From NCBI GenBank assembly GCA_023334545.1, contig JAADVB010000029.1, positions 46,818-110,817 on the forward strand: a stretch of 64,000 nt of DNA. Reading direction: 5' to 3'. Both the position numbers and the translations under genes were made by a program. Positions within the stretch are counted from its first letter, which is position 1. Every line of letters begins with the position of its first letter. The notes beneath the pieces were generated by a model. That model was not told the DNA's origin. It did no database searches and saw nothing but the letters and a program-made list of their open reading frames with translations. The stretch comes from Salisapilia sapeloensis CBS 127946. Taxonomy: Eukaryota; Protista; Oomycota. Below are positions 1-24,895 of the stretch, piece by piece.

Positions 1-2351
1 AAAATGCTAGTGAATCGTCGGATAAAGAGATCATTATTGCATTTGCTTCGAATGACCATGGTATCATGCTTCAAGATAGCTTTGACTTGGATGTCAAGTA
101 TTCGGTGCTACTTGGTATCCAAGTCCCTAGAGTCTACCTAATTGCACAACATGAAAAGGATGATGGAGAGGCTCCAAGCAGCTATTTACGAGCCAAGATC
201 ATGCGTGACTTTGTTGGGTTTGATAAAGTCGATGAGACTGCTCGCCAAGCTTTGATCGACTTTTGCTATTACATGACAATTGGAAACATGGATGAAGCAT
301 ACCGGAGTGTCAAGCTTATTGAAAATCCATCCGTGTGGGAAAATATGGCGCACATGTGCGTCAAGACGAAGCGACTAGATGTTGCAGAAGTATGCCTTGG
401 TAACATGGGCCATGCTCGTGGTGCTGCAGCAGTTCAGGAAGCGAAGAAAGAACCACAGATCGAAGTACCAGTGGCAATGGTCGCTATTCAGCTTGGTCTT
501 TTAGATGATGCAGCGCGGTTGTATCGCGAGTGTGGTCGATACGATCTGCTGAACAAACTGTATCAAGCAAGTGGATACTGGCAGAAAGCCACAAAGATCG
601 CTACAAAGCAAGATCGAGTTCACCTAAAGACAACTTACTATGAGCTCGCTCAGCACTACGAAGAGATGGGCGACCTCGAAGGAGCGATTACTGCATATGA
701 AGATGCTGGTACGCATCACAAAGACGTTCCTCGTATGCTGTACAAAGCGGGCAAGATGGAGATGCTACAAAAGTACATTACCACAAGTAAAAATCGTGAC
801 TTGCTCATTTGGTGGGCTCAATTCCAAGAGAGTAAAGGGAATCTGGACAAAGCGATCGAGACTTATGAACGAGCGGATGACATCCTATCCGTTGTACGCG
901 TACTATGCTACAAAGGAGAGTACAAGCCAGCCGTCAAGCTTGTGCAGTCTAGTGGACATCGTGGTGCCGCTTATCACCTCGCAAGACAGTTTGAGCTTCA
1001 AGAAGATGTCCAAAGCGCCATCCATTTCTTCGCGAAAGGAGGTTGTTACAACCATGCCATTCGCCTCGCAAAGGAACACCACTTTGATGCAGAGCTAATG
1101 AGCTTTGCCGTTCGGAGCAAGCAGAGCGATATGCTGGAGTGCGCTGCTTACTTTGAAAATCGAGGTGATATGGCCAAGGCAGTGCAGCTTTATCAACGCG
1201 GTGGTAATCTGAGCAAAGCACTTGATTTGTGCTTCCAAGCACAGCTCTTTGACGAATTACATCATCTTACGGACGAACTCGGCTCTGCGGATGCATCTCC
1301 AGTCATTGTCAAGAAGTGTGCTGCATTTTTCGTCGCAAATTTACAGTACGAAAAAGCGGTGCACATGTACTTGCGTTTATCCAGACTGGTGGAAGCTCTT
1401 GATATTTGCCTCGAACATAACGTCAAGGTGACGGAAGAGATGGCAGAGCAGATGACTCCAGCAAAAGATGACAAAACTGTGGACAAGAAGCGTCGTGTGG
1501 AGGTACTTCAAAAGCTCGCCAAGTGCTGCAAACAGCAAGGATTGTACCACTTGGCAACGAAGAAGTATACACAGGCTGGAAACAAGCTCAAAGCCATGAA
1601 ATGCCTTCTCAAGTCGGGCGATACGGAGAAAGTCATTTTCTTTGCCAACGTATCGCGCAACAACGAGATCTTCATCCTTGCTGCCAACTACCTCCAAACT
1701 CTAGATTGGCGACAAGATGCTGAAATCCTCAAACATATTGTGACTTTTTACTCTAAAGCAAAAGCTACTGAACAGCTCGCTGCATTCTATGATTCTTGTG
1801 CTCAAATGGAAATTGAAGAGTATCGCAACTACGCAAAGGCAACCAATGCTATTAAGGAGGCGATCAAAGTGATCACAAAGTCTCGTGGTGATGGCCGTGA
1901 AAAACTTCTTGCGCGATACGAAACCAAGTTATCACTGATGGAGCAGTTTGTCGATGCGAGAGCTTTATGGAAACAAAACAGAGCAGAAGCAGTTTCTGTC
2001 ATTACGAAACTACTAGAGGAACCAGACATTGCAGACGCCATTCGAATAGGTGATGGATATGGAATGCTTGTGGAAAGTGCGTACGCTAATGGAGACTTTT
2101 CACAATGCGCCACTCTACTCCAAATGATGCAACGTAAAGGAATTACTATAAAAGCGTACGTGGATACAAGAGTTCTACGGAGTGTCGAAGAGCATATGAG
2201 AGGCCTTAATTCTGCACAGGAAGCTGATGGGAAGACCGGATCAACTAGCACGGGTAGCGAAGTCAAAGGCGCAAAAGGCAGTGATAACGATGCTGAAGAA
2301 GAAATTGATGAAGATGGAGAGATGGAGGAAGACATCGAGGAAGAGGATTAA
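1..2351 (+). CDS. IFT140: Intraflagellar transport protein 140 (IFT-A), C-terminal TPR region; 5'-partial
   Basis: Frame is open from position 3 (NASESSDKEIIIAFASNDHGIMLQDSF). Characteristic segments MRDFVGFDKVDETARQALIDFCYYMTIGNMDEAYRSVKLI, VWENMAHMCVKTKRLDVAEVCLGNMGHARGA and YTQAGNKLKAMKCLLKSGDTEKVIFFANVSR; acidic tail; TAA at 2349-2351. Confidence 0.95.
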   Translation, partial: NASESSDKEIIIAFASNDHGIMLQDSFDLDVKYSVLLGIQVPRVYLIAQHEKDDGEAPSSYLRAKIMRDFVGFDKVDETARQALIDFCYYMTIGNMDEAYRSVKLIENPSVWENMAHMCVKTKRLDVAEVCLGNMGHARGAAAVQEAKKEPQIEVPVAMVAIQLGLLDDAARLYRECGRYDLLNKLYQASGYWQKATKIATKQDRVHLKTTYYELAQHYEEMGDLEGAITAYEDAGTHHKDVPRMLYKAGKMEMLQKYITTSKNRDLLIWWAQFQESKGNLDKAIETYERADDILSVVRVLCYKGEYKPAVKLVQSSGHRGAAYHLARQFELQEDVQSAIHFFAKGGCYNHAIRLAKEHHFDAELMSFAVRSKQSDMLECAAYFENRGDMAKAVQLYQRGGNLSKALDLCFQAQLFDELHHLTDELGSADASPVIVKKCAAFFVANLQYEKAVHMYLRLSRLVEALDICLEHNVKVTEEMAEQMTPAKDDKTVDKKRRVEVLQKLAKCCKQQGLYHLATKKYTQAGNKLKAMKCLLKSGDTEKVIFFANVSRNNEIFILAANYLQTLDWRQDAEILKHIVTFYSKAKATEQLAAFYDSCAQMEIEEYRNYAKATNAIKEAIKVITKSRGDGREKLLARYETKLSLMEQFVDARALWKQNRAEAVSVITKLLEEPDIADAIRIGDGYGMLVESAYANGDFSQCATLLQMMQRKGITIKAYVDTRVLRSVEEHMRGLNSAQEADGKTGSTSTGSEVKGAKGSDNDAEEEIDEDGEMEEDIEEED

Positions 2352-22420: not shown

Positions 22421-23630
22421 CTACTTGGTAGGCTTCGGCAGACGAGCTTTACGGAAGCGCACAAACGGGAAGATAGCTGCAGCTACGCTGAATGCATACC
22501 TAGTCATCCAAAGGTTAGATGGAGTGTATAGAGATTGTGGATAAGATAAGTACCAGGTGATGGCATAGCCGGCATGCTTTTCCGGTGTCATGTAAAACTC
22601 CATGTAGTTGTGAATCTTCTTACGTAAAGGCGACGCGAGCGTCACATTCTGCTTTTCATCCTCATCCGCTATAGAATTGTTAATCTATACCTACTTGAAG
22701 ATATAGAATAAGAGGTATATACCGAGTGAATCGAGGATGACTGGAAGTTCAGGCATGTCGACGCCCATGGCCTTTGCCATCTCTTCGTCGTTCAGGTAGT
22801 AAAAGTGGCGGCGATCCACTTCATTATCCGGTGTAAATTGGCCTCTCTACAAACCTTGACCAATTAAGTCCCGATCTATCTTTTTAGAATTCAAAACTAC
22901 CTCCTCTCCATGACGCAAGACACCTGTGATGGACACTGGACCAGGCATTTCCTTCTTGTCCATAGCCATGTGCTCATCCAATCGTTCTTTAGGTAGCCAT
23001 CCTCGGTTCACAATGATCGGCGTACCACCGAAGCGTTCCAATAACGTGTAGACGTATCCACCAGAGCGTACGCTGGCAACGCTATCCGTCTCCTCTGCTG
23101 GAGCCGATCGAGGATACAAGTAATACGTGCTGCCAGGCTTGAATTCACCATCGACTTTCAGTCGACGGAACTCGATATCATCACTAGCATCCACGTTAGA
23201 CACCTGTATTACACCAGCTATGAGTTTTGCACTGTACATGTTGCTACTGGCAGTTGCATTCGATGCCAACGGGACTGCAGCCTCCTTGAGCTGCTTGGAA
23301 CGTTCGGCAATCAAATCCACTTTCCAAAAGTAGCGTTGCGTCTGCATAAATTGTTACCAATCTGAAACTACAGCTTTAAGTACCAGTACGCACCTGCCAT
23401 GTGCCTAAATAAGCCGTTCCAGCCGCCTAATGCATGAGTTAATACCGACATTCTCGGCCATTGCGACGTCTACGTACCACAAGGGAGAAGAAGGCGATAC
23501 CGGCATATCGCGTTGCATTACTTTCACTCTGCACATTCTCCGATGCATTTGCAGTTGAAGCAGAGCGCGTAGGAACGAGTGATGACACACGTCCTCGGAG
23601 TCGTGATGGCCGTAGCAATCGCTGCATCAT
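22421..23630 (-). CDS. SURF1: SURF1/Shy1 cytochrome c oxidase assembly factor, about 6 exons
   Basis: Arg-rich presequence MMQRLLRPSRLRGR; spliced LGTWQ|TQRYFWKVDLI; IEFRRLKVDGEF; IIVNRGWLP; ITGVLRHGEE; C-terminal HAGYAITW|YAFSVAAAIF. Confidence 0.9.
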
Positions 23631-23642
23631 TTCTTTTGTTTT

Positions 23643-23663
23643 GAATGAAGTTCGAATGAAGTT
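23643..23663 (-). promoter_or_regulatory. Tandem 10-mer (AACTTCATTC x2 on the minus strand), oomycete Initiator-like element upstream of SURF1
   Basis: GAATGAAGTT occurs at 23643-23652 and 23654-23663 inside the 110-bp divergent SURF1/methyltransferase gap. The reverse complement contains TCATTC, resembling the oomycete Inr core. Confidence 0.35.
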
Positions 23664-23740
23664 AGAAACAAGTACAGGTAGTTGCTCTTTTTAATTAAAC
23701 TGTCTGACACGAAGGTTTGTCAATTGGTCACCTACGCGCT

Positions 23741-24895
23741 ATGCCGACTGCGGATGGACATCTCTTGGGCAATTTCCATGCCTATTACAACTTTAATCCT
23801 GTTCAAGAGCGACTGAGATTCTTAAGATGCCCGAATGGACAAGCACTTGTGAAAGCGTTGAGACAAGATGAACAAAAGGAGGTGGATGGGCCACCGGAAC
23901 CAGTCGTCATCGTTGATATTGGGTGCAATGAAGGTATTTATGACCATATATATCATTTGGATCTGTTTAATGAACGATTTGTAGGTAAATTGACGATGGG
24001 GTTTTATAACGAGGTTGCTGGACGAAAGTCTGAGGAAGCAATGTCTTCGACAGACGTCGTGCACTTTGATCCAGAAGCGATTGGCAAGGTGAATAATCTT
24101 TGCCAGCAGACAAAAACCCAAGTAGATTATCGAATCAAAGAAGATAAAGACACTGCTCATCAGCATTGGTACCTCTGTGAACTTTTCTTTGATGGAGAGC
24201 ACGTTGGGAGTGGATCTGGCGTGTCAAAGAAAGTGGCCAAATCGAAGGCTGCAAGTATGGCTCTAGCCAGCAATCCCACCCAGTCTACCGCAAACACAGA
24301 CACAGATAATACAAAAGAACTCACGGATTTGTCTTCCTGTGATGGCAAACGGCGATCTATCTTCCTGTTAGGCGTAGATATTGACAATGAGTTGATTGAC
24401 AAGGCCAAGAAAGAGAAGAAAGCGGTAGATGAAGGAGACGTTATCGACTTTCAGTGCTTGGATCTATCCACGGTAACTGCATTTGACCAAGAACTCACTT
24501 CTTTTGCGCACGCAGCGCTTGGGACAAAGCGAGAGCGGCCATACACTCTAGTGACGTGCTTTAGTGTAACCATGTGGGTACATTTGAATCATGGAGATGA
24601 TGGTTTATGGCGCTTCTTAGACCGCATTAGCTCTATAACAGAACACTTGGTCTTGGAGCCACAACCGTGGAAGTGTTATCGTAACGCTGTGAACCGACTG
24701 AAGCGGCGAAAGCATCCCATCCCAGACTCATTCACCCAACTCTCTGTGCGTCAGGATGTGTTTGAACGCATCAATGCGTTTTTACTCGAAAGCGGCCGCT
24801 TTCGATGGAAAGCAAACTTTGGCACGACCAACTGGTCTCGTCCAATGTGGCTCTATAGTCGACGTAAAGTACCGCATGTTAAATACATGGAATAG
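23741..24895 (+). CDS. Bin3/BCDIN3-family SAM-dependent RNA 5'-phosphate methyltransferase with an inserted dsRNA-binding domain
   Basis: GNFHAYYNFNP..ERL; motif I VDIGCNEG|KLT after removing intron 23934-23984; LLGVDIDNELIDKA; CFSVTMWVHLNHGDDGLWRFL; LVLEPQPWKCYRNAVNRL. A dsRBD-like segment lies at about 24068-24270. Confidence 0.88.
   Translation: MPTADGHLLGNFHAYYNFNPVQERLRFLRCPNGQALVKALRQDEQKEVDGPPEPVVIVDIGCNEGIYDHIYHLDLFNERFVGKLTMGFYNEVAGRKSEEAMSSTDVVHFDPEAIGKVNNLCQQTKTQVDYRIKEDKDTAHQHWYLCELFFDGEHVGSGSGVSKKVAKSKAASMALASNPTQSTANTDTDNTKELTDLSSCDGKRRSIFLLGVDIDNELIDKAKKEKKAVDEGDVIDFQCLDLSTVTAFDQELTSFAHAALGTKRERPYTLVTCFSVTMWVHLNHGDDGLWRFLDRISSITEHLVLEPQPWKCYRNAVNRLKRRKHPIPDSFTQLSVRQDVFERINAFLLESGRFRWKANFGTTNWSRPMWLYSRRKVPHVKYME

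Follow-up and report, generated by a model that had tools for sequence, protein, structure and literature searches.

The locus described here raises the question of which RNA is methylated by an enzyme that carries a domain for binding double-stranded RNA (dsRBD) inside its own catalytic fold. The gene lies at positions 23741-24895 (+) of a 64,000-nucleotide stretch of the oomycete Salisapilia sapeloensis CBS 127946 (contig JAADVB010000029.1), which is referred to as the window, and all coordinates below are those of the window unless another contig is named. An earlier note, made from the sequence letters, had read the gene as an RNA 5'-phosphate methyltransferase of the Bin3/BCDIN3D type with an inserted dsRBD, and had suggested an undescribed branch of RNA silencing or antiviral defence. 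Our analysis points to a BCDIN3D-type enzyme with a canonical dsRBD, and by analogy with characterised proteins we consider cytoplasmic tRNA-His to be the most likely main substrate of this predicted 5'-monophosphate methyltransferase, with a probability of roughly 0.55.

The open reading frame (ORF) at 23741-24895 is stop-free over 384 codons and belongs to a single two-exon gene. Exon 1 (23741..23933, +) begins with the ATG at 23741, which is supported by the ORF, by RNA-derived contigs that begin at 23741 or 23742 and by the coinciding starts of homologues, and the exon 1 block of the contigs closes at 23933. It codes for the N-terminal alpha0 region, strand 1 and S-adenosylmethionine (SAM) motif I up to VDIGCNE and the first base of the following Gly codon. 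Exon 2 (23985..24895, +) codes for helix A, a first linker, the dsRBD, a second linker and strands 2-7, and ends with the TAG at 24893-24895. The two exons are separated by a 51-nucleotide GT..AG intron (23934-23984, +), which is in frame and stop-free and interrupts motif I between DIGCNEG and KLT; if retained, it would place 17 extra amino acids within the motif. Three public runs, all belonging to one study, gave contigs in which precisely these positions are skipped, the 17 encoded residues were missing in 17 of 17 aligned homologues, and in the AlphaFold model of the unspliced ORF they showed predicted local distance difference test (pLDDT) values below 50, while the same region was confident in the intron-free Phytophthora sojae homologue. 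Based on these observations, we assigned 23934-23984 as an intron. Although the runs are not labelled as RNA, the contigs also skip two introns of a divergently oriented SURF1 gene, indicating that they are RNA-derived. Residue numbers in this report are those of the unspliced 384-codon ORF, on which the searches and the model were run with the intron-free P. sojae homologue as control.

Beyond the intron the contigs were continuous from 23985 to approximately 24889 with no second joint, indicating that the messenger RNA (mRNA) retains the entire insert and that the mature protein has 367 amino acids. The RNA-derived contigs of all four runs stop at 24874-24889, just short of the stop codon, and no contig covers 24933-25400; the 3' untranslated region is either very short or unassembled. 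A 2025 run from another study contained the same two genes (SURF1 and the methyltransferase, window 23300-24874) at 90-95% identity with mostly synonymous differences. Its dsRBD part was free of gaps, and 21 of the 33 listed differences in the C-terminal half were synonymous, including all those in the conserved core, which by sequence comparison indicates that this run holds a close relative of the source organism.

We then examined the family of the methyltransferase. The Pfam Bin3 profile (PF06859) matched amino acids 268-373 with 75.5 bits (cut-off 27, E = 5.9e-21) over profile positions 1-108 of 109. The best sequence match among solved structures was human BCDIN3D (6L8U, 4.8e-30, versus 2e-8 for MePCE), and the alignment pairs query residues 9-67 with chain residues 39-88 and query residues 205-375 with chain residues 102-265. 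When the model was superposed with VIA-align, the BCDIN3D structure gave a Z score of 22.9, a root-mean-square deviation (rmsd) of 2.8 Å and 35% identity over 225/228 residues, while MePCE gave a Z score of 17.1. BCDIN3D was also the top match of Foldseek (E = 2e-13, TMt 0.81, with MePCE at a TMt of about 0.54). A MePCE-type identity was rejected, as the protein clearly resembles BCDIN3D more closely and the genome contains a MePCE-type gene elsewhere, and both the alignments and the model identify the predicted protein as a Bin3 methyltransferase of the BCDIN3D type and not of the MePCE type.

The residues required for activity are retained. Mutation of 13 residues abolished or crippled human BCDIN3D (Liu et al. 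2020, PMC7026607), and their counterparts, human residue first, are Y37/Y15, F40/F18, R46/R24, D72/D59, G74/G61, N76/N63, D110/D213, I111/I214, D135/D241, S165/S275, W169/W279, Q198/Q308 and R257/R367. In the alpha0 region, the stretch GNFxxYYxFxxxxxR (G10-R24; 23768..23812, +), defined by the 6L8U alignment and its invariant columns, contains Y15 and F18, which by homology would contact the 5'-phosphate, and R24, which would contact SAM. Strands 2-7 together with the Bin3 signature (24353..24865, +), located by the Pfam Bin3 match, the 6L8U match and VIA-align, hold D213 and I214 (ribose and adenine), D241, S275, W279, Q308, R367 and the alpha6' helix K311-R322. The SAM-binding set is kept with a sole conservative change (I166 to V276). 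The phosphate contacts W279 and Q308 were invariant in 85 of 85 sequences; Y15, R367 and F18, the last being the counterpart of the stacking residue F40, were invariant among 18 aligned sequences and reached a conservation of at least 90% in the set of 85, and the catalytic residues as a whole were mostly invariant or nearly so in the larger set. The alpha6' helix, in which human K201, R204, R208, R209, R211 and K212 are matched by K311, R314, N318, R319, K321 and R322, is basic at five of these six positions. Query residues 351-375 align to chain residues 241-265 of 6L8U without a gap, indicating a short BCDIN3D-type beta6-beta7 loop. Such a loop, which lacks the alpha7 of MePCE, admits a monophosphate but not a triphosphate to the methyl donor (PMC7026607). 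As judged from these alignments, the BCDIN3D-type catalytic core is intact.

The structural examination placed an insert of about 111 amino acids (aa 94-204) between helix A and strand 2. The last core element ahead of it is helix A (K83-G93; 23987..24019, +) of the Rossmann fold, modelled as helical at 83-92 and aligned to human DLSVALYKHFL. The insert consists of a poorly conserved linker 1 (aa 94-107; 24020..24061, +; pLDDT ~65-82), the dsRBD (aa 108-178; 24062..24274, +) and a low-complexity, gappy linker 2 of variable length (aa 179-204; 24275..24352, +; pLDDT ~59-67). The Pfam dsrm profile (PF00035) matched amino acids 114-176 with 42.2 bits (cut-off 23, E = 1.2e-10) over profile positions 2-64 of 66. 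The AlphaFold2 model of the unspliced ORF, built on 85 sequences, had a mean pLDDT of 86 and a predicted template modelling score (pTM) of 0.86, and showed strand 1 (aa 55-60), helix A (83-92), the dsRBD and strand 2 (aa 207-213) in this order. The dsRBD was modelled with pLDDT above 90 in an alpha-beta-beta-beta-alpha arrangement (alpha 112-123, beta 128-135, 143-150 and 153-160, alpha 163-177), and the P. sojae homologue had the same layout with a pLDDT of 89. Foldseek matched the domain to the dsRBDs of Xlrbpa (1DI2, TMt 0.78, rmsd 1.9), Staufen1 (6HTU, 0.74) and PKR (1X48, 0.66).

The description given in the earlier note is therefore confirmed in full, coordinates included. Bin3 and dsrm both scored above their cut-offs, and the Rossmann-fold model has the dsRBD inside the catalytic fold. 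The quoted string LLGVDID is present as given, DIGCNEGKLT appears only after removal of the 51-nucleotide intron, and the dsRBD string was found at ~24068-24265, where it had been placed. The length of the insert agrees closely with the ~120 amino acids given there; it folds as a dsRBD (pLDDT >90 at aa 112-177, with matches to solved dsRBDs) and is kept in the mRNA, as seen in contigs of three runs. The lack of a dsRBD in animal enzymes, as stated in the note, agrees with insert columns that are empty in aligned animal BCDIN3D.

Comparison of 44 dsRBD-bearing relatives revealed that the residues by which such domains contact double-stranded RNA (dsRNA) are nearly invariant. The segment SKKVAKSKAA (S162-A171; 24224..24253, +) at the start of helix alpha2 contains the canonical KKxAK dsRNA-contact motif, and in this region-3 motif (S-K-K-V-A-K-x-K-A-A) every position has been retained by 38-44 of the 44 relatives. 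K163, K164, A166, K167 and H140 are all present, with the loop-2 His (H140) kept in 40 of 44 relatives, and in helix 1 N118 is shared by 43 of the 44 and Q122 by 42. Mean pairwise identity among these relatives was 51% for the dsRBD and 57% for the enzyme core, compared with 24% for linker 1 and 16% for linker 2. This is the pattern expected of an RNA-binding (type A) dsRBD that is under selection and sits on flexible tethers. Within the whole genome, only about three dsrm matches were found, and that in the window is the strongest.

The dsRBD and its linkers occupy exactly the position of loop 92-99 of human BCDIN3D. Crystals of the human enzyme were obtained only after three flexible, poorly conserved stretches, including this internal loop, had been deleted (PMC7026607), and the truncated enzyme retained ~25% of its activity (Liu et al. 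2020, PMC7026607). Since the loop is absent from the crystal construct, the numbering of the 6L8U chain is offset by 8 before it and by 0 after it, and with these offsets every residue named in PMC7026607 has the correct identity.

We next considered how widely this architecture occurs. The architecture was shared by every oomycete sampled. A word-based protein search identified about 60 oomycete proteins that have it, with an identically placed insert; they belong to Phytophthora, Peronospora, Hyaloperonospora, Bremia, Plasmopara, Pythium, Globisporangium, Albugo, Aphanomyces, Saprolegnia, Achlya and Thraustotheca. They are 33-45% identical to the Salisapilia protein, and several are already annotated 'Double stranded RNA binding' or 'RNA methyltransferase'. 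The Salisapilia copy is divergent (best identity 45%) and is the sole aligned member with the 51-nucleotide intron. Animal BCDIN3D proteins (~230-290 amino acids; human, fly, fish and frog) have zero residues in the insert columns. In a tree calculated from the methyltransferase columns alone, the Salisapilia protein fell within the oomycete clade (Shimodaira-Hasegawa-like approximate likelihood ratio test (SH-aLRT) 96) and weakly beside Albugo (SH-aLRT 85). Presence of the dsRBD required two state changes for the 44 dsRBD-bearing rows, and a single change is compatible with the starred branches, so that one origin of the insertion is allowed by the sequences, not proven. Three dsRBD-bearing sequences (P0055, P0061 and P0065) lay just outside the core oomycete clade. 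A 401-amino-acid metagenome protein, P0064, is annotated with Bin3 and an RNA recognition motif (RRM, PF00076) in place of the dsRBD, and looks like an independent fusion of the Bin3 family to another kind of RNA-binding domain.

Among the RNA-silencing entries in Table 2 of Matari & Blair 2014 (PMC4030286) is a 'dsRNA-binding protein w/ Bin3' of Phytophthora infestans (PITG_03262). Together with the annotations in the ~60 oomycete proteins, this entry shows that the architecture is not undescribed; the BCDIN3D type, the genuine canonical dsRBD and the presence of the insert in mRNA are the parts of the earlier interpretation which stood. In full-text searches, we found no functional study of PITG_03262 or of the Bin3-dsRBD combination beyond the 2014 table. 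The architecture is thus catalogued but uncharacterised, and the window gene is an orthologue of a catalogued family, for which the structural and genomic context, and not the discovery of the architecture, is new. Set against the BCDIN3D enzymes that have been characterised, it represents an unstudied variant.

To what extent the genome supplies the expected substrate was examined in its assembly of 22.4 Mb, which is fragmented into 1365 contigs. Two Bin3 genes were found. The second is of the MePCE type (4.3e-26 to MePCE, PDB 5UNA, and 5e-4 to BCDIN3D), indicating that the dsRBD-bearing gene is the only BCDIN3D-type gene found in the genome and presumably the BCDIN3D orthologue. The MePCE-type gene, at ~700-1464 (+) of a 2.9-kb contig (L001, G000:C1233:1-2940), is split by at least one intron and adjoins an Sm-like ORF and a mitochondrial-carrier-like ORF. 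A tRNA-His(GTG) gene at L019:209-280 has the discriminator A73, and a G stands directly before it at L019:208, indicating that G-1 is gene-encoded. This G in turn follows directly on the discriminator A of a tRNA-Ala(AGC) gene at L019:207 (the pair spans L019:135-280, G000:C1300:20734-20879), and 3' processing of tRNA-Ala would expose G-1 as a 5'-monophosphate. This tRNA-His string is present at five places, mostly at contig ends. Six-frame searches of the whole genome gave no match to Thg1 (PF04446) or Thg1C (PF14413), an absence that is not proven in so fragmented an assembly and that fits an encoded G-1. Human BCDIN3D requires a 5'-monophosphate and an acceptor helix of eight pairs in which G-1 faces A73, and the encoded G-1 and A73 therefore make the identity elements needed by the human enzyme available in this genome. 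The genome also contains RNA interference (RNAi) machinery, namely two Argonaute (AGO)/Piwi-domain genes and Dicer/Drosha-like genes with tandem RNase III domains.

Based on these observations, we favour tRNA-His as the main substrate, because no second orthologue was found in the genome, the residues linked to the reaction are all retained, and human Dus2 provides a precedent for tRNA binding by a dsRBD. In the mechanism that we propose, a canonical type A dsRBD with two floppy linkers would have been inserted into the loop that joins helix A to strand 2, either in the course of oomycete evolution or before it. Where an RNA helix ends in a recessed nucleotide with a 5'-monophosphate, the core would draw this nucleotide into the SAM pocket by means of the conserved wedge of alpha0, the phosphate contacts (Y/W/Q/R) and the basic helix alpha6', while the tethered dsRBD would grip a more distant part of the A-form helix in the same molecule. 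This grip may raise affinity and favour substrates with ~12 or more stacked base pairs. tRNA-His, with its gene-encoded G-1 opposite A73 and its acceptor and T arms forming a stacked helix, would be such a substrate, and a second activity on other helical 5'-phosphate ends, such as hairpins and Dicer products, is possible. The Dus2 dsRBD binds the acceptor stem and T arm of tRNA (PMC6451096).

Here, we need to consider several points that weigh against a tRNA-His clamp. The Dus2 dsRBD needs an N-terminal extension for tRNA binding (PMC6451096), and animal BCDIN3D handles tRNA-His with no dsRBD at all, suggesting that the added domain may signal different or wider substrates. In view of the general topology of Rossmann folds, the loop that joins helix A to strand 2 should be located on that side of the sheet which faces away from the SAM pocket; the dsRBD would therefore be a tethered module and not a part of the pocket, and the clamp would depend on linker length. 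The linkers, of ~14 and 26 amino acids, are plausibly long enough, and the pTM of 0.85-0.86 across both models does not settle the placement of the dsRBD relative to the catalytic pocket. In addition, the Salisapilia domain departs from its relatives at N119, a region-1 contact position in helix alpha1 that is usually Glu (E or D in 41 of 44), and at Q141 (usually R), both of which are probably less critical positions of the dsRBD.

The question of a different substrate leads to RNA silencing, in which the dsRBD would direct the enzyme to long dsRNA, hairpin precursors or small interfering RNA (siRNA) duplexes, and methylation of the 5'-monophosphate would block the 5' pocket of Dicer, the MID domain of AGO or 5'-to-3' decay, making the enzyme a brake or a sorting step in oomycete RNAi or antiviral defence. 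Plant HEN1, which combines a dsRBD with a methyltransferase, shows that this is a workable design for marking the ends of small-RNA duplexes. The first report on human BCDIN3D, by Xhemalce and colleagues in 2012, is that it methylates the microRNA precursor (pre-miRNA) pre-miR-145 and hinders Dicer. The canonical dsRBD with its conserved dsRNA contacts, the strongest of the few dsrm matches in the genome, and the presence of AGO/Piwi and Dicer/Drosha-like genes are in line with such a role, and tRNA acceptor ends, pre-miRNAs and Dicer products would share a recessed 5'-phosphate beside a 3' overhang. When Matari & Blair 2014 assigned the orthologue to RNA silencing, this was done by domain content and name and not by experiment, and no paper that we found in full-text searches ties the gene to small RNAs. 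Moreover, the sole BCDIN3D-type gene keeps every tRNA-His-related residue, and the neighbouring genes are of the housekeeping kind (SURF1, Na/H exchanger, BRAP2). We consider a role in silencing possible but doubtful, and its specific form, in which dsRBD-guided BCDIN3D methylates the 5'-monophosphate on substrates or products of Dicer, or at the ends of dsRNA from viruses or transposons, slightly more doubtful still.

The domain could also serve mainly as a protein-protein or localisation module, for example by docking to Dicer or another RNA-processing complex. Some dsRBDs of the TRBP/Loqs type act in protein docking, and the flexible linkers would suit this function. Protein-binding (type B) dsRBDs, however, usually lose the KKxAK and loop-2 His contacts, and the retention of both in 38-44 of 44 relatives argues for RNA binding, which makes docking as the main function unlikely. 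It is far less credible, to the point of being negligible, that the insert represents an intron that escaped recognition, or a neighbouring gene fused in, and that the real protein is a plain BCDIN3D. The gene does hold one in-frame, stop-free intron, but nothing further; the insert is crossed without a joint by RNA-derived contigs of three runs and is conserved in frame in ~60 oomycete proteins and in the 90-95% identical relative. We rejected such a gene-model artefact, with the insert spliced out, because the RNA-derived contigs span the whole insert. Taken together, methylation of tRNA-His with the help of a helix-gripping dsRBD is the explanation that we prefer.

The genes around the methyltransferase are a SURF1-family gene, a Na/H exchanger, an SLC52-like gene and BRAP2, all of which are housekeeping genes and give no hint of function. 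The SURF1 gene (22847-23674, -) is arranged head-to-head with the methyltransferase, and the two start codons are ~110 nucleotides apart (23630 and 23741). Its introns at 23342-23393 and 23426-23476 (CT..AC on the + strand) were removed in contigs of four runs. One contig, from one run only, fuses the SURF1 and methyltransferase transcripts by skipping 103 nucleotides (23633-23735, with CT..AC ends) and also lacks the introns of both of these opposite-strand genes; it is probably an assembly chimera.

What methylation of the 5'-phosphate is for is still described as enigmatic (PMC7026607), and whether human BCDIN3D acts on pre-miRNAs or tRNA-His is disputed. A natural, lineage-wide fusion of BCDIN3D to a dsRBD offers a way into this substrate question, with the length or type of the helix as the possible selector. 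The oomycetes include Phytophthora, the downy mildews, Albugo and Saprolegnia, and small RNAs matter there for virulence and gene silencing. A 5'-methylphosphate would hide RNAs from standard ligation-based libraries, and a real second class of substrates could have escaped notice in this way. If dsRBD-guided methylation does occur on such RNAs, the marked molecules would be unreadable by Dicer or AGO and invisible to ligation-based small-RNA sequencing, and RNA silencing would then be subject to a hidden layer of regulation in a major group of pathogens of plants and animals.

Comparison with known systems shows which features are shared and which are peculiar to the oomycete enzyme. HEN1 likewise has a dsRBD and a SAM-dependent methyltransferase in one chain and marks the end of a helical small RNA, but its target is the 2'-O of the 3'-terminal ribose and not the 5'-phosphate, and its methyltransferase family and domain order are different. 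MePCE/Bin3, which caps the gamma-phosphate of 7SK and U6 (5UNA, 6DCB), belongs to the same Bin3 superfamily and has the alpha0 helix, whereas its longer beta6-beta7 segment is missing from the Salisapilia protein. With human Dus2 (PMC4627097, PMC6451096) the protein shares a canonical dsRBD within an RNA-modifying enzyme, the dsRBD of Dus2 being its tRNA-binding module; Dus2 differs in its unrelated catalytic domain, the C-terminal position of the dsRBD and its reliance on the N-terminal extension. PITG_03262 and its orthologues have the same architecture and insert position, at 35-45% identity over 97-100% of the length, but PITG_03262 is a catalogue entry only, and the window copy is divergent and carries the intron, N119 and Q141. 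Human BCDIN3D (6L8U, PMC7026607) has the same fold, the same SAM and 5'-phosphate contacts, the short beta6-beta7 loop and the basic alpha6' helix, and differs in having a short disordered loop (92-99) where the Salisapilia protein has the ~111-amino-acid linker-dsRBD-linker segment.

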